Assembly: GCF_001194135.2 (NCBI RefSeq)
Contig: NC_068986.1
Span: 68,358,062 to 68,422,061 of the forward strand
Direction: 5' to 3'
From: Octopus bimaculoides
Taxonomy: Eukaryota
DNA length: 64,000 nucleotides
Below are positions 12,834 through 49,733 of the stretch, piece after piece (the stretch's first letter is position 1; each line of letters opens with the position of its first letter). The position numbers and the translations under genes are program-made. The notes beneath the pieces are model-generated. The model was not told the DNA's origin, searched no databases, and saw only the letters and a list, made by a program, of their open reading frames with translations.

Positions 12834-14541
12834 CAGGGGTTGGACAAAATAATGGAAACACCTTAAAATTTCAAACAAATTTATTTTAATATTGGGTAGG
12901 ACCACCTTTGGCAGTAATTACAGCTTGAATTCTATGAGGTATGGACTTGTACAAAGTTTGAATTGTTTCCAAAGGAATTTTTGTCCATTCTTCAGCTAAA
13001 ATAGTCTCCAGTTCTTGTGATGATAGTGGAGGATATCGACTCCTTACTTGTTTCTCTAAAATGCACCATAAATGTTCAGTAATATTGAGATCTGGGGATT
13101 GTGGTGGGCAGATAAGATGTTCCACGTCACTAGAATGTTCCTTGTGCCATTCAGTAACAACTTTAGCTGTGTGAATTGGTGCATTATCATCCTGAAAGAT
13201 TGCATTTCCTTCCAGATACAGTTCCGCAGCCATAGGATGAATTTGATCAGATAAAATGCTTAAATAGTCTAGACTATTGGACTGGCAGATTTCCAAGATA
13301 TANNNNNNNNNNNNNNNNNNNNNNNNNNNNNNNNNNNNNNNNNNNNAGTTCCTCCTCCAGGTTTAACAGTTGGAAGAAGGCAGTCTGGGTTAAATGCTTC
13401 TTTTGGCTGTCCCTACACCAATACTCGGCTGGTGATCGGAAATAGAGTAAAGGATGACTTGCCCGAGAAAATAACATTCTTCCAGTACTCTAGGGACCAA
13501 TTCTGTTGTTGTTTACTCCACTCTAAATGCTTTGCAACATTTGTTTTTGAAAGTAGTGGTTTTCTGATTACAGCTCTCCCATGAAATCTGGCTTTGTGCA
13601 GCTCCTGGCAAACAGTTTTTGTGGAAACTTGGTGGTCCTTTCTAACAATTCACGTAAGAGTCTGACAGTCCCTATCTGAAAGTTTTAGTTTTCTTCCAGA
13701 GTTTTGTTTCGATGAGGAGATTTTTCCCTCTTTCTCAAAGACTGTCATTTTATTTGCCATAAAGGCAGTATACAGAGTAGCTGCGGGCTAGACAAACACA
13801 TTAATGAGATGAGATGAATGACGAACACAATAATATTAATGGGAGAAGACAGAAGCCCCTGCCGAACTCTGCTTCTCTAAAACATTGTTCTTTTATAGAT
13901 TTACAAATTGTGGCTATAAACCTCTTACTTCACAATTTCAATTTACATCATGTCTTTGAAATGAGGCACTTGCCTCTTACAATTTTTTTTTCATGGGCTA
14001 CATGCCCTTTCAATATGAGGCACTCGTCCTCTTACACTTTACCGCCCGACCAAGCTCAGTGCCTCACTCAAGCACCTCGATGGTTCGAGATCAGGCCACT
14101 TCAGCAAGTAGCAGAATGCGTCCTCGGGGAAGGAATCCATCACCCTGTACAAGTCATTTTCCCACACGACCTCCTCAACCACCTGCGGAGGCCAATCAGG
14201 GTCCTTAGTACAGGTGAGGGTCCAAACTTCTTGACAAATTCTTTAACAACCTCTCCCTTGTGGAATAGGATTACAAATTCTTCCTCATTCCAGGACGAGT
14301 CCACAATTTCTACTGTCAGTGGCACAATTCCCACTGACAGGCCTTCTTCCGTTGGTGGCACAATTCCCGCCAACGGAGCATCGGGACACACCGGCGGTGC
14401 ACTATCAGGCACCGACCATGTCCCGTTCTTCCTTTTTTTTCTTTTTGATACACCAAACATTTCGGCTGTTTTCATTACACTAGTTCCTACCATACGAGCA
14501 CCAATAATTTGATCTCTTTGAAAGTGCAATAGATCTGTCAT
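12834..14541 (-). mobile_element. Tc1-like transposon, copy B (DD36E), interrupted by a foreign insert
   Basis: TA + TIR CAGGGGTTGGACAAAATAATGGAAACACC at 12834; D(36)E motif DNAPIH...SPDLNITE; N-terminal HTH MTDLLHFQRDQIIGARMVG starts at 14541. Confidence 0.9.
13749..14440 (-). mobile_element. Insert of about 690 bp of unknown (probably retroposed) origin inside the Tc1 HTH region
   Basis: Transposase reading stops after GVSK (about 14443) and resumes at MTVFEKEGK (13748). The insert has a GC-richer coding-like part, an AT-rich 3' part ending AATAAA, and A-rich junctions. Confidence 0.65.
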
Positions 14542-17205: not shown

Positions 17206-17724
17206 NNNNNNNNNNNNNNNNNNNNNNNNNNNNNNNNNNNNNNNNNNNNNNNNNNNNNNNNNNNNNNNNNNNNNNNNNNNNNNNNNNNNNNNNNNNNNNN
17301 NNNNNNNNNNNNNNNNNNNNNNNNNNNNNNNNNNNNNNNNNNNNNNNNNNNNNNNNNNNNNNNNNNNNNNNNNNNNNNNNNNNNNNNNNNNNNNNNNNNN
17401 NNNNNNNNNNNNNNNNNNNNNNNNNNNNNNNNNNNNNNNNNNNNNNNNNNNNNNNNNNNNNNNNNNNNNNNNNNNNNNNNNNNNNNNNNNNNNNNNNNNN
17501 NNNNNNNNNNNNNNNNNNNNNNNNNNNNNNNNNNNNNNNNNNNNNNNNNNNNNNNNNNNNNNNNNNNNNNNNNNNNNNNNNNNNNNNNNNNNNNNNNNNN
17601 NNNNNNNNNNNNNNNNNNNNNNNNNNNNNNNNNNNNNNNNNNNNNNNNNNNNNNNNNNNNNNNNNNNNNNNNNNNNNNNNNNNNNNNNNNNNNNNNNNNN
17701 NNNNNNNNNNNNNNNNNNNNNNNN

Positions 17725-19778: not shown

Positions 19779-22310
19779 GTGCCCTGCAAAAACACTAACA
19801 TCAACTTTGACCTAACTAGACCGAACCCTGACTTCAGACAGCCTACAAGCGAATCAGATTTCAGTTTCAAAGCAAACACCCCCCTCACTCTCCAACCCTG
19901 ACTAACAAAAAATTAACTCCACTCAGTTCACTTTGAAGCTAGCCAAAAGGATAGACCCTGAAGAAGCTGCACCATAAATCTTGTCAGTTTGCTTCTGCAA
20001 CTACTCATAATCTGTGCAGTGGAAACACATCCAGGTCATAAAGACCATAACATATGCTGCATGAAATTGTAAAATAAGAGGAAATAGATTCTGAGGATGA
20101 ATAAGACTCCATGTCTTGTATTGTTATAATTATTGCTAATATATACTCCAGACAATATTACCATTCAGTGAAGCGAACACAGAATTGTGTATCAGAGGAA
20201 TTTACAGAGTGACTGACAACTAAAAGTAGTCATAGACATTAAATACTGATTGATGTGGTTAGCCATACCCAAGAACATGACTGAAAGCCACCATAGTATC
20301 TGCCCAGATGATATATCCCTCAAAACTCACGCACACACATGTGATACATTTTGTGATTGCTCTGAAATGCATTGTCAGTGATGCTTCTGGGGTATCAGGA
20401 GGTTTCAGGTCTTTCAGCATCACCACCACCCTCATCCTGTTGACCCAGCCCAGGTTGATTAAGTCCCAGCTTGCATCTCACTGGTCTACCCTCTTTATCC
20501 CATGACTTCAGCTGATGGAATTTCAGTGATGGAACTTACAGTCCTTTTTATATATGTGAGAGTGTATGTTTGTGTTTCCTTGCTTTGAAATGGTGTGGTA
20601 GTTGTAAGTGAGTGTCACTATCATACAAACAGTGTCATTAATCTCCAACATTCTGCAAGAATATGTTTAACCATGGGTAAATATTACCTTGTTTGGAGGC
20701 AGGTAAGGGTTGGCGACAGGTAGAGCATACAGCCATAGAAAATCAGCCTCAAATAAACTCCATTCAACCCTTTCAAGCAGAGAAAAGTAGACGTTAAATG
20801 ATATCTGAATGAAAAATTATGCATTTGGAATGATAATGGCATACCCACTGTCACTGTGGAAAATATGGAAGACAAGAGAGTGGTGTGGAGGTAGTATTAT
20901 AAGGACACAAATGCAATGACATAAATTCCAGGCTACTAGAGAAAAAAACAAAAAAAACAGCTCTTCTTCATCAAGACAGAATATCTCCCAGAACTGAGGA
21001 TCCCAACTGAAGCAAACACTACCACCAACACCACCCATCATCACTACCATTATCATCTGTAGAAATAACCTCTGCCAACCACAAACCAACAGTACAGCTA
21101 CACTAAAGACGATGATGCTGAGTCATTCCACCTAATTAGTCATTGTTACTAAAATGCAATGTTCTAGTAACTTTTCTGAAGTAGTGAGCATTTCATCTCA
21201 AGCCCTTTCTAGTTTTGAAAATATTTAACAAAATATAAATAATAATTCTAACTTGTGTGTCAGTTGAGGGTGTGATCCACCTCACTGTAAGTGGCACTCT
21301 GTCGGTTAGGATGACAAAGGTTTCAGTTGATCTGATCAACAGAACAGCCTGCTTGTGAAATAAACATACAAATGGTTGAGCACTCCAGAGACATGTGTAC
21401 TCTTATCATAGTTCTCATGGAGATTCAGTGTGACACAGAATATGAAAAGGCCAAAGGTGATCATTTCATAACATCAAACCCTTTCCAGTCTTAAAATTTT
21501 TTTAACAAAATATAAATACATTATTCTAACTGGTGTGTCGTGTCAGTTAACGGTATGATCCATCTCACCATAGACGTAAGGAGAAAGTAAAGTGTCCATG
21601 TGACTCATCATTTTACATCCACTTTTCCATGCTTGCATAAGTCAGACAGTGTTTATTGAGGCAGATTTTTTACAACCATATGTCCTTCCTGTTGCCAATG
21701 AATAAAGCAATTAAGTGGCATGATGACAAGTGTTCCAGTTGATGTGATCAATGGAGCAACTTGCTTGTGAAATTAATGTGCAAGTGGCTGAGTACTCCAC
21801 AGACACATGTATTCCTAACTTAGCTTTCAGTGAGATTCAACTTAACACAGAATGTGACAAGGCAGGCCCTTTGAAATACATTTTTGCCAGCTGAATGAAC
21901 TGGAGTGAAAATAATGTGTTTTGCTCAAAGACACAACACGCCACCAGGTATTAAACTCAACCTTATGATCATGAATACCACATAGCCATGCCTACCATTT
22001 TGCTCAGTGAATTTTGTGAAGCCTAATTTTAGTAATACTAATGTTAGTCATAGTATAATCAGTGTGACAGGACACCCAATGACAATCACCACAATATGCC
22101 ACTGATGCCTACACCTATATATGCGAGCATTTTTTAAATTGCATAATTTGTAACCAAAATTTAGTCACCAGTCTAATCTACACAAAGTTGTAAAGTTGTT
22201 GTGTCCCCAGGTGAACTGGAGAAGCAATAAAGTCAGATAGTGTCACACTATTTTTTCAAACTCTGCAATTCTGAGTTTAGCTTCTACAAAGGTCAGCTTT
22301 GCCTTTTAGC

Positions 22311-23940: not shown

Positions 23941-25189
23941 GAATAAATTTTTTTTTTGTAGATTCCCCATTTGCTTACAATTTGAAAGGCAAGTTAGGGA
24001 CCCATCATAATATCCTTTCTACAATAGGCACAAGGCCTGAAATTTTGCGGAAGGGGTCTTGTCAGTTACCAGAAAGAAATGTGCTGAAGTTAAAATCTTA
24101 GCAAATAAAGACAGTTATTACTTCCCTTCCTTTCAATCATATAATCCTTTCTACTTTAAGCACGACCTGAAATTTGGGGGGAGGGGAGGGGAGTTAATTA
24201 CCTCCACTTGGTACTCAACAGGTATGTATTTCATCAACCCTGGAAATATGAAAGGCAAAGTCATCTTTCAACAGAATTTGAGCCCAACCCATGCCAGCTC
24301 CCCACCTTAGGTAACCATCATTTATATCAAGGAAGATCATCAGTTAAGCTGCTGGCTCCAGTGATTAATCTTTTAGACCAGGCTAGAGTATACTGCAGCT
24401 TCATGACTTTCTGAATGGTACACATAACAAAAATTTATCTTGAAAATATTTTAGAACTGATCCACTTAATGATGAGCTATGTTACATGCAGCCCTCTTCT
24501 CGAAAAGGTTGTTCATACCTGTTGTAGACTACTGATTAAACTGTGTAACAATTTTTTTTTTTTTTTTTTCGTCTTTGGTCAATCAATGTTATTTCCTGTA
24601 TTCTTTTGTCTAGAAATCAGAGGAAATGACAATTATTCCTTTCAAAATTTGCTTTTGTGGCCTGGACATCAATGTTTCAAAACTGACCTATTTTGCATTA
24701 CATTTCAGACAGTTTTAGCGCTGAGCTGCTGAAGCAGAAATATCACAGAAATGCTCAATACCACAGATTTGCTTGTCAGTTGCTTGACCTTGACCACTTG
24801 AGCATGTCACCTAGTGGCTGACAATATGTGCATCTCTGATCATGAGTAGAAGTAGTAGGGAGCATCATAGCCACACGTTGAGAAGGATTTTTTGGAGTGT
24901 GAATAAATGTAAAAGCAAAAGTTTGAAGGAAATGTTAACCATTTTTCATACTTTTTAGGAAATAACAAATAGGAAATAGGAAATAACAGTTGCTACCCAA
25001 GGACAATAATCATGTTACGCAGTGGTATTAATGTAAGAAATATAAGTTTAATCTCTTAAGAAATACTTAAAAAGTTTAATATTTTGAGAAAGAGAAGTTG
25101 TGGGTAGTTGTTGACCAGGATTCAGAACTCTGTACAGTAGAAACAACCATGAACTATGCAAAGGGAAACATTAATACTGAATTTGCAAC

Positions 25190-25214
25190 AACAACAGCAT
25201 TGGCAGTGGTGGCG

Positions 25215-25248
<34 letters not shown>

Positions 25249-25279
25249 TAGTAGTAGCAGCAGCAGTAAAAGTAGAAGT

Positions 25280-25311
<32 letters not shown>

Positions 25312-25330
25312 TAGCAGCAGCACTAGCACT
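25190..25330. repeat. Compound (AGC)n/(AGT)n microsatellite
   Basis: Directly visible; explains the poly-A/V and poly-T/A ORFs. Confidence 0.95.
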
Positions 25331-25532
25331 AGTTTTTCCCTGACACACTAGTTCCATTATATTTGAAAAGTGCTTGTAATAAAACTTAGAATTTTATACA
25401 TCTTTCTTCATTTCTCCTTATACTTGATTAAACAAGAAGGCAAACTCCACCCTGACACACCACACACACACACACACACAGAGTTCCATAGATTATTGTT
25501 TAAAAGATAGTATCTTCTTCCTCTTTTCATAG

Positions 25533-25620
25533 ATTGTGCAAACGCTGATGAAGCATTGAAGAGAGTTCAGAGTAGATGCAAAGAAGAAATGGCTGACCTA
25601 CATGCTGACGAAAATTGCGA
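25533..25620 (+). CDS. Internal exon of an uncharacterised Cys-rich protein ((D)CANADEALKRVQSRCKEEMADLHADENC)
   Basis: Acceptor CTTTTCATAG and donor GTAAGT (25621); 88 bp, open, phase 1 to 2, joins the next exon in frame. Confidence 0.75.
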
Positions 25621-26447
25621 GTAAGTAGTCAATCAATGTCCGTTTATATTTCTCATAGTTATATAAGAAAACATGTACTTATTAGTAAAGTACCAAACAC
25701 CTGTACCCTGCAGCAACTCAAGAAGACCCATTACCTACAGCAGAAGCGTTAAGGCTGATCTGTCTGGTAGTGTAAAGCATTCATGGCAGAACCGTGTAAA
25801 AGTGCCCATGTGACAGCACCACATAAAAGCACTCATTTCTAACAATCCAGCAATGTCACGACAAGGAGAAATAAACATACACACACTCACACATACATAC
25901 GTATACACATACACACACACAAACATACATACATACATACTGATTTGAAATTTTGGCACAAGGCCAGCAATTTGGGGGGAGGGGCAAGTCGATTACATCA
26001 ACCCCAGTGTTCAACTGGTACTTATTTTATTGACACCCAAAAGAATGAAAGGTAAAATCAACATTGGCAGAATTTTAACTCAGAACATAAAGACAGATGA
26101 AATGCTGCTAAGCATTCTGTCAGGTTTGCAAGCGAGTCTGCCAGCTCACTGCCTCAAATATAAAAATATATTGATGTAATGAAAGAGTTAGTTTTATTAT
26201 TTCCAATTCTTCAGTATCAGAAAATAACTGCAATAGAGATTAAATATGGTGAGTAGATGAGTAGTGGTTTATTATTTTTGAAGTCAGAAAACACAACATT
26301 ATGTATCTAAAATGATGAACTGAATCTTTCATACATAATTATGCATTTATTTCACCTGACATGTTTTGTGAAACATTAGAAGTATTATATGCTATTATAA
26401 AAATACCAGTACTTCATGTATCTCTTCTTTATGCTTCATTTCTACAG

Positions 26448-26632
26448 AAAGTTCAAGGTCCTGTTAACTTGTGTAGCCAAATCAAACACATCATTTGTCA
26501 ACGAGTTTGTGCAAAGGAGTGATTTGAATTGTAGATTCTCTCCAGAATTTATAGAGAGCTTACAAAGATACCAATCAACTGAAAGCCAAACTGTCACCAA
26601 ATCTACAGATACACAAGATGGGAGCTATGCCA
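26448..26632 (+). CDS. Internal exon (EKFKVLLTCVAKSNTSFVNEFVQRSDLNCRFSPEFIESLQRYQSTESQTVTKSTDTQDGSYA)
   Basis: Acceptor TTCATTTCTACAG and donor GTAAGT (26633); 185 bp, phase 2 to 1. Confidence 0.8.
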
Positions 26633-26974
26633 GTAAGTAATTGGTTCATAACTTTTCATTTCTTTTGAATATGGAATTGTCAGTGGTGGCAGTGACGTTT
26701 GAATGGTTTGATGAGATCCTACAGGCTAGAGTGTTCGTTTTGGTATGGTTTCTATGGTTTAATGCCCTTCCTACTGCCAACTACTGTACAGAGTGTACTG
26801 GGTGATCTTTCATGTTACAAGCACTAGTGAGGTTACCAAGAAGTTAACAAGAGAAGACCCCTTGTCTGAGATGGGTGTAATATTGAGTGAGATCGCTTAT
26901 GCAAGATTGTTGAGAGGCAAGAAAAGTATTATAGAAGGATAAGAACCAGTCAGATTCAGATTAAGAAGTAAAAG

Positions 26975-27115
26975 AGGATGAAGATGACGATGATGACAAA
27001 GAAGACGACAATGACAAAGAAGATGACAAAAGAAGAAGAGGACAAAGAAGACAAAAACGAAAAAGATGAAGACGAGAAAGAAGAAGAAAAAGACAACAAT
27101 GTAGAAGATGAAGAA
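26975..27115. repeat. Purine-rich (GAY/GAA)n low-complexity tract
   Basis: Directly visible; intronic. Confidence 0.9.
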
Positions 27116-27234
27116 CTTATTGTAGAGAGTGCTCAGGTGTTCTACAATTCATCAGAAAAAGTAACCAAAAGCACATGAACAGTACTTAAAATAATGCACA
27201 GGAAGTGAACAGTGAATAGGTCATTTAAAATTTA

Positions 27235-27700
27235 AAAACTAAAAATTGGAGGGAGGGTTAATGAATAGCATAGAAGTTTTGAAGGATGTGGTGATCTGAC
27301 AGCTAACAACTGATGTAGGTAGTTTATTCCATGCTTCAGCAATTCTGAGTGTGAAAAGATGTTTCTGAAAGTCACCAACAATGGAGTCCTGATCCCAGAG
27401 ATCAACCATAGATGTGGTCTGACCACTAGGATGATGTACTTCCTACGGAAGCCCCTCTGGCATCACTGCTCTATCTCCCAAAAGACGATGCTCCACATCT
27501 ACAACACATTGGTCCTCTGATTTCTCTTCAATAGAGCCGGAACATGTTCCCTCTCAAAGACCTTGCAAAGAGGATCAACAATTTCAATAGCAGAGCCCTG
27601 AGAACCATCAATCACATCAGATGGTACAATCATGTTTCCAACAAAGAACTGTATGCTTGCACACATCAACCCACAGCCTCCCACCACATAGCTATCCATC
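27235..27700 (+). mobile_element. RTE LINE reverse-transcriptase C-terminal remnant
   Basis: ..HIYNTLVL.. and LAKRINNFNSRALRTINHIRWYNHVSNKEL..HQP, broken by stops. Confidence 0.7.
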
Positions 27701-28006
27701 ACAGATTTCTATATTCAAGCTTTGTGATTGAATTTAGTAGGTGGAAGTTACTGCCGTGTGTGTATATGTCTGTGTATGTGCTTGTGCCTCTCTCCCAGAG
27801 AGTGAGAGGGGGATTGCTATACTTACTTATTTACACCATGTCTCTTTATTATCCACAAGCCGTTATAAAACAGACTATAAAAAATACTTAATACAAAACT
27901 GATTCTTTCATCCTAAATTTGCAGCAAATTGTTTTACATTATTTTCTTTATTTTTTTCTTTCTTTTTTATTCATGTTAATAACAAAATTTTTTTTTTTAC
28001 TTACAG

Positions 28007-28086
28007 GCAAAACATTCGCATTGATCATTGTCCCAATTGTAATGTCCAGCATATCTGTCTTAACTTTCTTTGCTCTATACAACTGA
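28007..28086 (+). CDS. Terminal coding exon with hydrophobic tail (SKTFALIIVPIVMSSISVLTFFALYN*)
   Basis: Long T-tract plus TTACAG acceptor, phase 1, tandem stops TGA TAG. Confidence 0.75.
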
Positions 28087-28406
28087 TAGAGCCCACATTC
28101 ATCATATCTAGAGAATTTAAATTATGGTGGATATGGATTCTCAAATTTAAAACTATTGGAGATCATGAAGAGAACAGAATTTTATTTTAAATATTTTATG
28201 CCTGATCGCCAGTCATCATCATTTGTTATTTTTGGGATGTGTACATATCCACTAAAATGGTTACTGGGCTGATGTCTACACTGGGTTTATTATCAGCAAG
28301 TGATAAATGTGGTATTAAGAATAGTGGAATGAGTGAAGACAAAGCTATGATAATACTCCAGATGAATGATAAATCTGAGCAGACACAGTACCATTTGAGC
28401 ATATAA

Positions 28407-28456
<50 letters not shown>

Positions 28457-28461
28457 ATACA

Positions 28462-29296
28462 TAATTAAAATTAGGGTTCAGCAAGAATTGCTTCACCACA
28501 CACCGAAAATTAGAAATAGCAGTCAAAACTACTATTTCTCTACCAAAATATATCTCCCAGCCAGCAACACTTGCCACTAAAACATAGGCAAAAAAGAAAA
28601 AATAACGAATCTAACCAGCTCTGATTAACTGTATACGCGTTTCAGGATTAAAGAGGTGTAAATTATATTACCCGAACTTACTTCCTTCATCAGTACAGTA
28701 TTTCAAAATTATAAATCCGAAAATGTTAATAAAAGAATAAGTAATTCAATCAAGCGACATCAAACGATTATCCAGGAATAGCATTTCCGCATTCATATAG
28801 ACGAGCAAGAAAATCGTATCATTCCTCAATTACCCACGTGTGCTACGAGTAATCCCGCAGAAAACTGCAGTTTACTATCAGGGAGTAAATAAATTCTCAC
28901 AGATATAGGGTAAAAATTAATAATTAATGAATAATTAGTAATTTTACCAAGTAGTTTGGTGTGTTAAAAAACCATTATCAGTAAACTTATATAAACATAA
29001 TAAAATTAGGATTCAACAAGAATTGCTTCACCACACACCGAAAATTAGAAATAGCAGTCTTGTTTGCCTATGTTTTAGTGGCGAGTGTTGCTGTCTGAAA
29101 GATATATTTTGGTAGTGAAATAGTAGTTTTGACTGCTATTTCTAATTTTCTGTGCGTGGTGAAACAATTCTTGCTGAATCCTAATTTTAATTATGTTTAT
29201 ATAAATTTACCAATAATGGGTTTTTTTAACACACCGAACTACTTGGTTAAAATTAATAATTAATTAATTAATTTTTACCCTGTATCTGTAAGAATA
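28462..29296 (-). mobile_element. Penelope-like pseudo-LTR fragment with direct and inverted duplications
   Basis: Direct repeat 28462-28525 / 28998-29060 (535-bp period); 29062-29296 is the reverse complement of 28884-29060 and 28462-28590; flanked by (TA)n; contains a hammerhead. Confidence 0.7.
28628..28699 (-). ncRNA. Minimal type I hammerhead ribozyme
   Basis: Minus strand ACTGTA-CTGATGA-AGGA-(35 nt)-TCCT-GAAA-CGCG-TA-TACAGT: 6-bp stem I, intact core, 4-bp stem II, palindromic ACGCGT stem III, GUA cleavage triplet. Confidence 0.85.
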
Positions 29297-43220: not shown

Positions 43221-44511
43221 TGAAGGGTGTTCATTGAAGATTTCTCCAGACCCACTTCTGGTTATTGCAGGAAATGGAACTTGTATAGGTATAATCATAC
43301 ATGTCTCTACATGTCACATTGTAAATTGCAGCTTTCCACTAGTATTCATTTGTCTTTTACAGCTGCTGAAGTGGACTAACGCATTAGAATGGAGGCAGTT
43401 GAATGCAGATCAGTGATCAGGTTCTTATACTTGAAAGGTTGTACACCAAAAGAGACTATCGATGGGATGAAAGAAGTTTATGGTGACGATGCACCATCAT
43501 ACAATGTAGTCAAGCACTGGCATTGCCAGTTCAAATGCGGTCAGACATCAGTGGAAACTGCTCCTATTACTGAACCACATTCCGTCATTGATGATGACAC
43601 CATCCATAAAGTGGAAGCCACCATTTTAGAGAATCACCGCATAATTATTTGGCAACTAGCCCAAGAAGTGAAGATAAGTGTAGGGTCCATGGTAAAAATC
43701 ATTCATGACAATTTGCACATACAGAAGTTGTCTACACGATGGATTCCCCTGATGTTCACACCTTTTCAGGAGCAGGAATGAGTCAATTGCTGCCAGGTTC
43801 TTCTGGCAATGTACCAAGAGAATGAGCAAGTCTTTTTTAACAGACTTATCACACAGGATGAAACATGGGTCCATCACTGTAATCCTGAGACAAAAGTCCA
43901 GTCGAAGCAATGGAAGCACAATAATTCACTACCTCAAAAGAAGGCTCGTGTCCAACCCTCAGCAGGCAAGGTAATGTTTGTAGTCATTTGGGACCAGCAC
44001 GAAGTAGTGATGATGGATTTTCTGGCAAAGGACACCATAATTAACAGGGCATATCATGCTTGTCTGCTGCAGAAATTGCAGGATGCCATCAAAGCAGAGA
44101 GGTGTGGCATGCTGACCAAAGGAGCCTGCCTCCTCCAAAATAATGCCCCAGTTCACAATGTGCATGGGGGTCAGATGAAAGCACACTCCTGCAGCTATGA
44201 AATCCTTTCTCATTCTTCTTACTCTCCCAACCTTGCACCATCTGACTTCCACCTCTTTCCAACCATGAAGTCTTTTTTGAAAGGGAAGCACTTTTTTGAT
44301 GATGACGAACTTATTTCCAAGGTAAAGTCTTGGCTCCAGACGTAACCTACCGGCTTCTACAGACGAAGTCTTCACATCTACATAAAGCAATGGGAGAAGT
44401 GTGTCGCCATTGATGGGGGCTATGTAGAGAAGCACTAATAATTATGCCAAGTTTCATTTATCCCAATCCTTGGGAAGTAGGTCAGAGGAAATCTTTAATG
44501 AACACTCTTTG
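43221..44511 (+). mobile_element. Full-length mariner (DD34D) element, 1291 bp
   Basis: TA at 43219-20 and 44512-13; imperfect TIRs of about 60 bp (TGAAGGGTGTTCATTGAAGATTTC / GAAATCTTTAATGAACACTCTTTG). Confidence 0.9.
43389..44438 (+). pseudogene. Mariner transposase pseudogene (349 codons, two in-frame stops)
   Basis: WIPLMFT, ITQDETWVHH, QNNAPVH (catalytic D to N), YSPNLAPSDFHLF, QWEKCVAIDGGYVEK; stops at 43779 and 44343; no frameshift. Confidence 0.9.
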
Positions 44512-47250: not shown

Positions 47251-48340
47251 CTAAAAAAGAAAAAAAGAAAAAGGATTTTAAAGAAGTGGGATGCTAGTTT
47301 TATTCATCAAATATATTCATAACTCAGATCAAGATCAAATAAAATTTATAGTCAATGCAAGTAACATTTGTTCACATGGATATCGTTCGCTTTCAACTTC
47401 AAATATTAATATCTAATATTTTGACCAGCAATTTACAGCTGTTTTTGTCATTGTGTACTCTCGTTAACTCTGCAAGAACAGAATTATGACATAGTCAATG
47501 GTAAAAACAATCTGCAATTCTTGCAGCCCAAATAATGCAATACCTTCCATTATGCAGTGGTAGAGCAAGTGGAATACAAAGTAGAAATCAACCATTTTAC
47601 TATTTCCTCTGTATATAATCATAAGTTCTTATGGTAGTCAAACCAAGACTTTCAAAAGTCTGTGTGGGTTGAAGGAGAATAGAGGATTAGATTTTTCGCC
47701 TCATAGGCCTTTATGAGCAAACATGTTTACAAGCGTATGCTATAATTGATGAAGTGAAAAGAGTATAATCTTAAATGATTTGATCCAATAATAACTTGTT
47801 TTAATATGTGAAACCATTAAGAAGCCCCAAAGTATTAGAATGCCCTTCCAATCAATCATTGTCTGTCAAGCGTGGTTGATGTATTTAACACTTAAACATT
47901 CAGATTATCCTTTTAAATGTAATGCTTATTTGTTTACATTGTTTTGAATTGACTTTTGAGACTTTGATGATGTGATTGTTTATTTTTAGAACGACATTAT
48001 AGTATAGGTGTGAAGATTTAGATCTGACCAATAAAACAGGTAGAATATTTTGGTTGGATATAGCTAGTTTAAATACTTAAAGATTAAATGTCATGCCAAA
48101 TGCTGATTATTCTGTGATTCCTATATAATAGAGTGGCCATACTTTTATACAATTTGAACTCTAGCCGGTTGCTTTCACATTCCTACTATTCTGATTGATA
48201 CTCTATGAATATTATTATTCATTCAACAACTAATATGCAATATTGTGTCTTTAAGTATGTTATAAACATACATAAATACTCTTCAGCAAGTAAACACATA
48301 AGACAATAAAAAAGAAGTTATGTTGCATGTTATGACTTAC

Positions 48341-48555
48341 TTTGATGTCTTGTATTAAGCCTTGTTGCATAGTACACCCTCCAACAGCATAGATATATCC
48401 ATTGACAGACGCCATTGCATGGCAGGAACGCCTTTGTATCAAGGACTCCCTTCTTTTCCAATCTTTCACAAGTGGATCGTAGCTGACAACATTATTTAAC
48501 AAATCTGTCCCATCATGCCCGCCAGATATGTACAACTGATTGTTTAAAACACAAC
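48341..48555 (-). CDS. Kelch-like protein, penultimate exon (GCVLNNQLYISGGHDG...YDP..DW...YIYAVGG...IQDIK)
   Basis: Acceptor TTTACAG and donor GTAAGT; 215 bp, phase 1 to 0. Confidence 0.93.
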
Positions 48556-49733
48556 CTGTAAATAAAAACGTAACTTTATCAACACAAGACTTGATTGGAT
48601 ATGCATATAACATAAAGGTGATACAAAAGCAGTTTTATTCTTAGTTTTTTTTTTATCTATTTTCATAATGTGGATTAAATAATTCTGCAGTATAGCACTT
48701 TTTACAACACAATACTCTGTCCACAAATCCATTCAACCAGTATACGTTATTCTTTTGCGGTATAAATTCCATTCTACTCTATTGCTCTTTGAAACTAAAG
48801 TTATTCAAGGGAGGTAACTCCGAATTAACCTATCAAAATGACAAAAAAAAATTTGTTTTCTTTAATCTTTAACATTAAGTTTTTCGGGAGTTTTTTTTTT
48901 TTTTCATTCTTAAAATGTTTTTCTCTTAAATTCGCAACAAGTTAAATGGGGAGAACAGTTTTATCACAAAATGATATTTCTACTTAATATTACTGCTAGA
49001 TATTACAGGAAATGGCATAACCTAAAACGTATGCACAGACACTTGTACACGGTCAGTCAATTTGCTAGAAAAAACGGCCAACTCTCTCTCAAAAATCACA
49101 GCCTTTTAAAAGAATAAAGCGAGTCACATTAGATAATGTAAACTTTGGTATATAAAACGACAGGTTGGTCACATCTAATCCCAGGTCTGCTTGACCAGAA
49201 CTGATTTAGGGCTAAACAACTACAATGGTTTGAATCCCCTTCATGAATATAATGAATAAAAAACTTGGGAAGTTTATCATTACACTAAACGAACATAATA
49301 TTAGAAATACAGATTGAGTTATTTCCCTTCTTAGTGATGAGAAAGAATATTCCTTCAACACACACACATTATTTTTTATTTGTCTGTACTGTGGCTATGC
49401 AGGGCAGCACCTTCTAGGCTTACAGGCAAACGAATCTACACCAGTACTTATTTTTTAAAACACACACACACGTACACGGAAGGCTTCTTTCAGTTTCTGG
49501 CTACCAAATCCACTCACAAGGCTTTGGTCGCTGCCAAGCTACTATAGAAGACACTTGCCCAAGGTGCCACACAATGGGGTGACTCCTGAACCATATGATT
49601 TGGAAGCAAACTTCTTATCACACAACCACGTCTGTACATCATCATCATCATCATCCTTTAGCATCCGTTTCCCATGCTTGATGGGCTGTGTATATATACA
49701 AAAATATTACATATATGTTATATCTTTTTTTTG

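Follow-up and report, generated by a model that had tools for sequence, protein, structure and literature searches.

LOC106874009 of Octopus bimaculoides, an octopod gene for a predicted small four-cysteine glycoprotein with a candidate GPI signal and rapid replacement between Octopus species

The 64,000-nt stretch of Octopus bimaculoides DNA analysed here (contig NC_068986.1, positions 68,358,062 to 68,422,061 of the forward strand; hereafter the window) carries on its plus strand three exons of LOC106874009, which is almost certainly a real protein-coding gene. We read LOC106874009 as a four-exon octopod gene encoding a secretory-pathway, helical, four-Cys glycoprotein that is held at the membrane by a glycosylphosphatidylinositol (GPI) anchor, and we assign this reading as a whole, anchor included, a probability of roughly 0.6. 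The gene structure, the orthologs, the pattern of conservation and the lack of known domains are shown directly by the analysis, whereas cleavage of the signal peptide, the disulfides, the glycosylation, the GPI anchor, the location at the surface and a role in recognition are what we infer. The locus had been singled out in a prediction made from the letters of the window (the original prediction), which described a hidden spliced gene for a Cys-rich, probably GPI-anchored surface protein. The peptide encoded by the three window exons is 100% identical to residues 23-138 of RefSeq XP_014777055.1 (138 aa, LOC106874009, O. bimaculoides; also EukProt EP00106_P009613), a record named "uncharacterized protein" and lacking any function, domain or family designation. 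The public annotation thus already includes the gene, and neither the adjective "hidden" nor any claim to have discovered its existence applies. No paper on LOC106874009 was found in a literature search with the gene and protein identifiers. What is defined here is a family of four proteins that share a predicted helical ectodomain with four Cys, a glycan site that has been conserved and a C-terminus that is likely to be a GPI signal.

Joining the three proposed plus-strand segments (88, 185 and 80 nt) yields a frame that reads CANADEALK...FFALYN and then TGA. The acceptors of exons 2, 3 and 4 (ttttcatAG, tttctacAG and acttacAG) and the two donors (GTAAGT in both cases) are canonical AG/GT sites, which confirms the three spliced exons of the original prediction and its peptide from residue 2 onwards. 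The first residue had been given as Asp by building its codon with the G of the acceptor AG; the true codon is A/AT, in which the A comes from exon 1 and the AT from exon 2, and it specifies Asn22. Two of the exons had been reported as absent from the open reading frame (ORF) track, which is plausible because exon 2 lies in no ORF of at least 50 aa and exon 4 lies only within a 55-aa TTG ORF. The gene is laid out in the window as follows.

1-25532 (+): 3' portion of intron 1 of LOC106874009, from the window-to-chromosome mapping and the location of exon 1 upstream
25533-25620 (+): exon 2, 88 nt, from the last two bases of the Asn22 codon to the first two of Glu51
25621-26447 (+): intron 2, 827 nt, GTAAGT...AG, with about 8% mismatches plus indels against the O. 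sinensis intron
26448-26632 (+): exon 3, 185 nt, from the third base of Glu51 to the first base of Ser113
26633-28006 (+): intron 3, 1374 nt, housing an old dispersed repeat at about 26649-27548
28007-28086 (+): exon 4, coding part of 80 nt, from the last two bases of Ser113 to Asn138, with TGA at 28084-28086
28087-28447 (+): probable start of the 3' untranslated region, about 360 nt collinear with O. sinensis at 88% identity

Exon 2 encodes the end of the signal-peptide c-region or the mature N-terminus, together with helix 1 and residues Cys23 (not conserved), Cys37 and Cys50. Helices 2-4, Cys59, Cys79, the sequon Asn64-Thr-Ser (26485-26493) and an S/T-rich polar stalk are encoded by exon 3, which also contains the candidate omega tripeptide Ser110-Tyr-Ala112 (26623-26631), and exon 4 codes for the hydrophobic C-terminal tail alone, KTFALIIVPIVMSSISVLTFFALYN (K114 to N138). 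Past the stop codon, the first poly(A)-signal-like hexamers lie at 28464, 28647 and 28728.

The odd number of Cys residues in the three-exon peptide had been taken as a hint that an upstream exon was missing. Such an exon does exist; it codes for the signal peptide and is located beyond the window, in which neither tblastn nor six-frame word searches, extended to the flanks of the N-runs, found it. The argument from the Cys count was nevertheless wrong, as exon 1 contributes just one Cys, within the core of the signal peptide, Cys23 occurs only in O. bimaculoides (O. sinensis and O. vulgaris have Pro at this position, and the residue is missing from Argonauta), and the conserved count is four. 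N-runs aside, the window is 100% identical to CM046606.1 (assembly GCA_001194135.2), and its base 1 corresponds to base 21149 (offset 21148) of the O. bimaculoides chromosome locus, designated L001, the O. sinensis and O. vulgaris loci being L002 and L004. Exon 1, located by tblastn and then by direct reading, occupies L001 10001-10064, which is 11,084-11,147 nt ahead of window base 1; it reads MTFRWMTCILSIMIILLYSNS plus a split codon and ends in ...TCA A/GTAAGT, phase-compatible with exon 2. Since exon 1 sits about 11.1 kb upstream of the window, the first 25,532 nt of the window belong to a first intron with a total length of 36,616 nt. When O. bimaculoides and O. vulgaris are compared across this region, the upstream TATA region, the 5' leader, the ATG and the donor are strongly conserved. 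The TATA-type element, CTATATATTAAGCG, is itself conserved and precedes the ATG by about 110 nt (L001 9880-10000; L004 2865-3000). The signal-peptide codons, in contrast, have diverged strongly and differ by an in-frame indel of 6 nt. As judged from this alignment, the pattern is the expected picture for a genuine signal-peptide first exon.

Homologs were sought in 5.8 billion proteins by word-indexed searches, first with the peptide and next with a three-species profile, and in 1.84 billion representatives by an exhaustive HMMER profile search. The only real relatives recovered were O. sinensis XP_029638182.1 (104 aa; E=1.4e-40 in the word-indexed search), O. vulgaris CAI9723742.1 (136 aa; recovered through its cluster) and Argonauta hians GAB1608288.1 (135 aa; E=5.5e-21 in the exhaustive HMMER search), all three annotated merely as uncharacterised or hypothetical. 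At the protein level, identity amounts to 67-71% for the Octopus species and 42-44% for Argonauta, and within the reach of these searches the family is known only from incirrate octopods (Octopus, Argonauta). No paralogs were detected in the window or in the 59-kb, 28-kb, 45-kb and 54-kb loci. Two bacterial repeat proteins (P0005, P0006) were set aside as spurious, having matched the low-complexity ESQTVT..TTFAL stretch of the stalk alone. Pfam returned no match, either for the window peptide (E up to 10) or for the three full-length proteins (E up to 5), and single-sequence and profile searches of the PDB gave nothing below E=0.75. Matches to Bcr-Abl_Oligo (E=0.17) and to a 59-aa hypothetical protein (E=0.8) were dismissed as chance-level.

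The architecture of the gene is common to O. bimaculoides, O. vulgaris and Argonauta hians, with four exons, splice phases 1/2/1 and a long first intron (36.6 kb in O. bimaculoides, approximately 40 kb in O. vulgaris and 22.8 kb in Argonauta). The exons measure 64/88/185/80 nt in O. bimaculoides and 61/88/176/83 nt in Argonauta, and the 88-nt exon 2 is found with the same phase in O. bimaculoides, O. sinensis and Argonauta. Orthologous exons with matching splice sites are present in O. sinensis, O. vulgaris and Argonauta, and the proteins they encode have the stalk and the hydrophobic tail in common. The O. sinensis model XP_029638182.1 is truncated at its N-terminus, starting from a Met inside exon 2 (L002 9963-10050), although the acceptor and 11 in-frame upstream codons (PANADEALKRVQ) are conserved in the genome and omitted from the model, and it also leaves out a distant signal-peptide exon like that of O. 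vulgaris.

The predicted protein comprises the signal peptide from exon 1, an ectodomain of about 70 residues and, behind it, the polar S/T-rich stalk (QSTESQTVTKSTDTQDG). Applying a simple rule, a signal peptide is recognisable in all three full-length proteins as a basic residue followed by a hydrophobic core of 12-15 residues. In the three-species alignment, four Cys residues (C37, C50, C59 and C79) are invariant, with spacing C-x12/13-C-x8-C-x19-C, as are the N64-T-S sequon, which sits between helices 2 and 3, and the motifs LKRVQ, SFVN.FV and FS.EF. The ectodomain would hold enough conserved Cys for two disulfides. As the original prediction noted, the O. bimaculoides peptide contains five Cys, an NTS sequon, an S/T-rich stretch and a hydrophobic run at its end.

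AlphaFold2, run on the ectodomain alone with three sequences, predicted four helices (mean predicted local distance difference test score, pLDDT, 64.6). When this model (pLDDT 64.6) was compared with the PDB by Foldseek, no match reached E<=0.001; the lowest E-value (1.4) belonged to generic helical bundles (MIT, TOM20 and designed proteins), and the ectodomain was assigned to no fold. The octopod-only relatives, the four-helix AlphaFold2 prediction and the lack of a known family agree with the proposal of a lineage-specific helical ectodomain able to form disulfides. The folds put forward as candidates for it fared otherwise, as GFRalpha, stanniocalcin and DUF19 appeared neither in the Pfam and PDB-sequence searches nor among the Foldseek matches listed.

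The comparison with Argonauta revealed marked constraint, with a proportion of synonymous differences (pS) of 0.73, which is saturated, a proportion of nonsynonymous differences (pN) of 0.35, a dN/dS of about 0.19 and a synonymous excess with p=8e-5. The original prediction had named missing junction reads together with the lack of any ortholog with dN/dS below 1 as evidence against the gene, and Argonauta supplies such an ortholog. A different picture was obtained within Octopus. The coding sequences (CDS) of O. bimaculoides and O. sinensis present 40 nonsynonymous and 6 synonymous differences, for a dN/dS of 1.75; judged from coding sites alone, the excess over 1 is not significant (p=0.27). 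Collinear non-coding DNA provides a neutral p-distance of 0.080 over 1.9 kb for O. sinensis and of 0.086 over 19.6 kb for O. vulgaris. Synonymous sites between O. bimaculoides and O. sinensis (0.086) match this non-coding rate, whereas replacement sites (0.144 overall and 0.175 in the ectodomain) lie above it (Fisher p=0.0017 and 0.00018, respectively), so that replacement-site divergence between Octopus species is approximately 1.8 to 2.3 times that of non-coding DNA. The 351-nt CDS nonetheless contains 0 indels between Octopus species, against about 4.8 events expected at the non-coding rate (P=0.008), and no stop codon, an outcome with a probability of 0.12 after 46 random substitutions. 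Polarised with Argonauta as the outgroup, the changes fall on both Octopus lineages. Because the frame has been maintained while replacement has outpaced the neutral rate, the data from this one species pair and short gene are suggestive of positive or diversifying selection between Octopus species. Taken over the family, the alignments point to long-term purifying selection, combined with accelerated, and probably adaptive, replacement between Octopus species. This fast evolution is the only mildly surprising feature of LOC106874009, and the rapid change of the ectodomain points towards a recognition role.

Within the same comparison, the stalk and tail codons (26578-26632 and 28007-28083) show 0 synonymous and 10 nonsynonymous differences from O. 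sinensis, when about 3 synonymous differences would be expected over their approximately 31 synonymous sites. This lack of synonymous change may reflect chance or a constraint at the nucleotide level, such as splicing enhancers near the short last exon.

The nature of the C-terminal tail bears on how the protein would be held at the membrane. The candidate omega tripeptide reads S110-Y-A112 in O. bimaculoides; its counterpart in O. vulgaris and O. sinensis is N-Y-A, and Argonauta has N-H-A. The tripeptide is preceded by a polar linker of about 10 residues (TKSTDTQDG), and 28 residues separate the candidate omega site from the C-terminus. Past omega+2, a spacer of three residues (S-K-T; 6-7 residues if the hydrophobic stretch is counted as the last 19-20) leads into an uncharged hydrophobic run of 22-23 residues that ends 1-2 residues before the C-terminus, leaving no cytoplasmic tail. 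In the pattern described for GPI-anchored proteins (PMC10491789), a signal peptide is combined with a polar linker of some 10 residues, omega and omega+2 residues that are both small, an omega+1 residue other than Pro, a hydrophilic spacer of about 8-12 residues and a C-terminal hydrophobic stretch of 15-20 or more residues; efficient GPI signals are reported to be marginally hydrophobic (Galian et al. 2012, as cited in PMC10491789). Insertion free energies for the best 19-mer, estimated as a simple sum on the Hessa biological hydrophobicity scale, range from -0.3 to -0.7 kcal/mol for the Octopus tails and reach +2.8 for Argonauta; by this estimate, the hydrophobicity of the Octopus and Argonauta tails would be marginal or insufficient for a firm transmembrane helix. 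On these rule-based checks, we favour a GPI signal over a transmembrane segment as the identity of the tail, and consider it very probable that the LOC106874009 product is secretory and membrane-tethered by one means or the other.

Under the reading proposed here, the signal peptide of exon 1 would be cleavable and direct co-translational entry into the endoplasmic reticulum, where the mature part of about 90 residues would fold into a helical bundle of four helices with two disulfides. N-glycosylation would take place at N64, possibly accompanied by O-glycosylation of the stalk, and GPI transamidase would remove the tail by transamidation at about S110 and attach the GPI lipid. The resulting glycoprotein would be displayed on the outer leaflet of the plasma membrane. 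Since it would have no intracellular part, it would have to act through partners, as a ligand, a co-receptor or a recognition or adhesion tag.

Several of these features recall known classes of surface protein. The octopod family resembles GPI-anchored proteins in having a signal peptide at the N-terminus, a polar linker ahead of a candidate omega residue that is small (S/N), an Ala at omega+2 and a marginally hydrophobic end without a cytoplasmic tail. Small helical, disulfide-bonded, N-glycosylated and GPI-anchored proteins are known from vertebrates, among them those with the Doppel/PrP-type C-terminal domain and the helical Cys domains of Gas1/GFRalpha. The octopod proteins would share with them a signal peptide, a small disulfide-stabilised helical glycosylated domain, a short linker, a GPI signal and the absence of an intracellular part, but no sequence or fold similarity was detected in Pfam, PDB or Foldseek searches, and the likeness is hence one of analogy and not of membership. 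GFRalpha domains contain about ten Cys, and the four conserved Cys of the octopod family likewise set it apart from the GFRalpha, stanniocalcin and DUF19 folds, with ~10 or more. A parallel is offered by octopus-specific uncharacterised genes with signal peptides or transmembrane segments that are reported as markers of optic-lobe cell types (bioRxiv 10.1101/2022.06.11.495763), which are also octopod-restricted, encode small secretory or membrane proteins, lack detectable homologs and yield low-confidence AlphaFold models. The genes reported there as obimac0010569, obimac0019980 and obimac0022194 are apparently not LOC106874009, and no identifier could be mapped.

Several observations weigh against the GPI-anchored reading or temper it. 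The octopod spacer of 3-7 residues falls short of the 8-12 quoted in PMC10491789; in most other features the tail fits the probable GPI anchor of the original prediction on rule-based checks. The tail motif P..MSS.S.L has been kept from Octopus to Argonauta, a degree of conservation unusual for a signal that is to be discarded and possibly indicative of a functional transmembrane helix. The AlphaFold2 model of the full-length protein is unusable (mean pLDDT 39) and that of the ectodomain is of moderate confidence, which makes the four-helix fold and its disulfides tentative. Finally, the case for expression comes from the public gene models, and the Argonauta model, produced with the pipeline described in PMC12682272, may be partly homology-projected.

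The conserved motif and the short spacer behind the candidate omega site would be more readily accommodated if the same gene and the same ectodomain were combined with a permanent type I transmembrane helix that has essentially no cytoplasmic tail, and that might pair with another membrane protein through its conserved Pro/Ser face. The Octopus tails, with their 22-23 uncharged residues, a mean Kyte-Doolittle value of about 2.1 and a slightly negative summed insertion energy, are compatible with such a helix, and Argonauta carries an Arg just ahead of its C-terminus. The Argonauta tail, however, appears too polar for a stable helix at about +2.8 kcal/mol, and the Octopus proteins lack positive charge on the would-be cytoplasmic side and have K/R on the luminal side instead. 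Moreover, these proteins have kept a small-residue tripeptide (S/N, Y/H, A) with the spacing suited to a GPI signal, 28 residues ahead of the C-terminus. We therefore hold a transmembrane tail to be possible but the more doubtful of the two interpretations. A further proposal would have the protein cut as a prohormone or pheromone at a conserved Lys-Arg pair, or shed from the membrane as a soluble factor. Water-borne pheromones of Aplysia are small helical disulfide proteins, to which the small size of the octopod protein can be likened, and a signal peptide is present and Lys31-Arg32 is invariant in all species. The KR pair is nonetheless placed inside predicted helix 1, cleavage there would free just a 7-9-residue acidic peptide without an amidation signal, and the hydrophobic C-terminal exon is conserved in all species. 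On these grounds prohormone cleavage at the KR site was rejected, and a secreted precursor or shed factor is the least probable of the explanations weighed here; release after GPI anchoring is possible and would be compatible with the reading that we prefer.

The remaining alternative denies the protein altogether, holding that LOC106874009 is an annotation artefact or a decaying or non-coding locus whose ORF is fortuitous, or was functional until recently, and evolves neutrally within Octopus. The O. bimaculoides/O. sinensis dN/dS, being statistically indistinguishable from 1 on coding sites, is what such a locus would show; nucleotide identity in the exons (86.9%) does not exceed that in the introns, and no transcript contig with the protein was found in the collection searched, which holds one contig per protein. 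Neutral decay would nevertheless be expected to bring replacement sites to the neutral rate and not above it, as observed both overall and in the ectodomain, and it does not account for the absence of indels and stops between Octopus species, for the conservation of the exon 1 promoter, ATG and donor, or for the intact four-exon ORF of Argonauta, in which the splice phases, the four Cys and the sequon have been kept at a dN/dS far below 1. We consider this alternative very unlikely.

Beyond the reading of a GPI-anchored glycoprotein lies a more speculative extension, according to which the family is an octopod invention with a new small helical fold, engaged in fast-evolving surface recognition (e.g. 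of gametes, of self and non-self, or chemotactile) under positive selection between related Octopus species, with the disulfide scaffold, the glycan site and the lipid anchor kept. We regard this extension as unlikely in its full form. LOC106874009 is in any case one among many lineage-restricted, uncharacterised secretory or membrane proteins of octopods, and replacement above the neutral rate with a preserved frame is a pattern typical of recognition, reproductive or immune surface proteins. If its expression fell in gametes, suckers or particular neurons, the gene would be a tractable candidate for a recognition system specific to octopods. The case also illustrates that a short-exon eukaryotic gene can be recovered from raw sequence, as it was in the original prediction.

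The introns of LOC106874009 and the remainder of the window contain repeats and other coding segments. The plus-strand dispersed repeat of intron 3 (26649-27548) has an 86.5% identical copy in intron 1 (L001 12092-12956) and carries a K/E/D-rich ORF (26978-27178). The same block is present, 86% identical, at the orthologous O. sinensis site, and because it is common to both species its insertion predates their split. Just 3' of it, the segment at 27544-27702 resembles the C-terminal part of a reverse transcriptase of the non-LTR (non-long-terminal-repeat) type, with no match in Pfam. Intron 1 also includes two minus-strand DDE_3 (Tc1-like) transposase fragments, at 12886-13296 and 4878-5231. 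Directly upstream of exon 2 lie a long (GTA/GCA/GCT)n-type microsatellite (25171-25343) and a (CA)n run (25460-25480), the latter shared with O. sinensis at the orthologous position. TA-rich microsatellites border the assembly gaps (N-runs at 9346-10212, 17206-17724 and others). Downstream of the gene, a mariner/Mos1-type transposase remnant (HTH_48 plus Transposase_1) occupies 43389-44345 on the plus strand. An open reading segment on the minus strand at 48260-48613, about 20 kb downstream of the LOC106874009 exons, strongly matches Kelch repeats (Kelch_1, E=3e-17) and probably belongs, as an exon, to a nearby kelch-like gene oriented opposite to LOC106874009.

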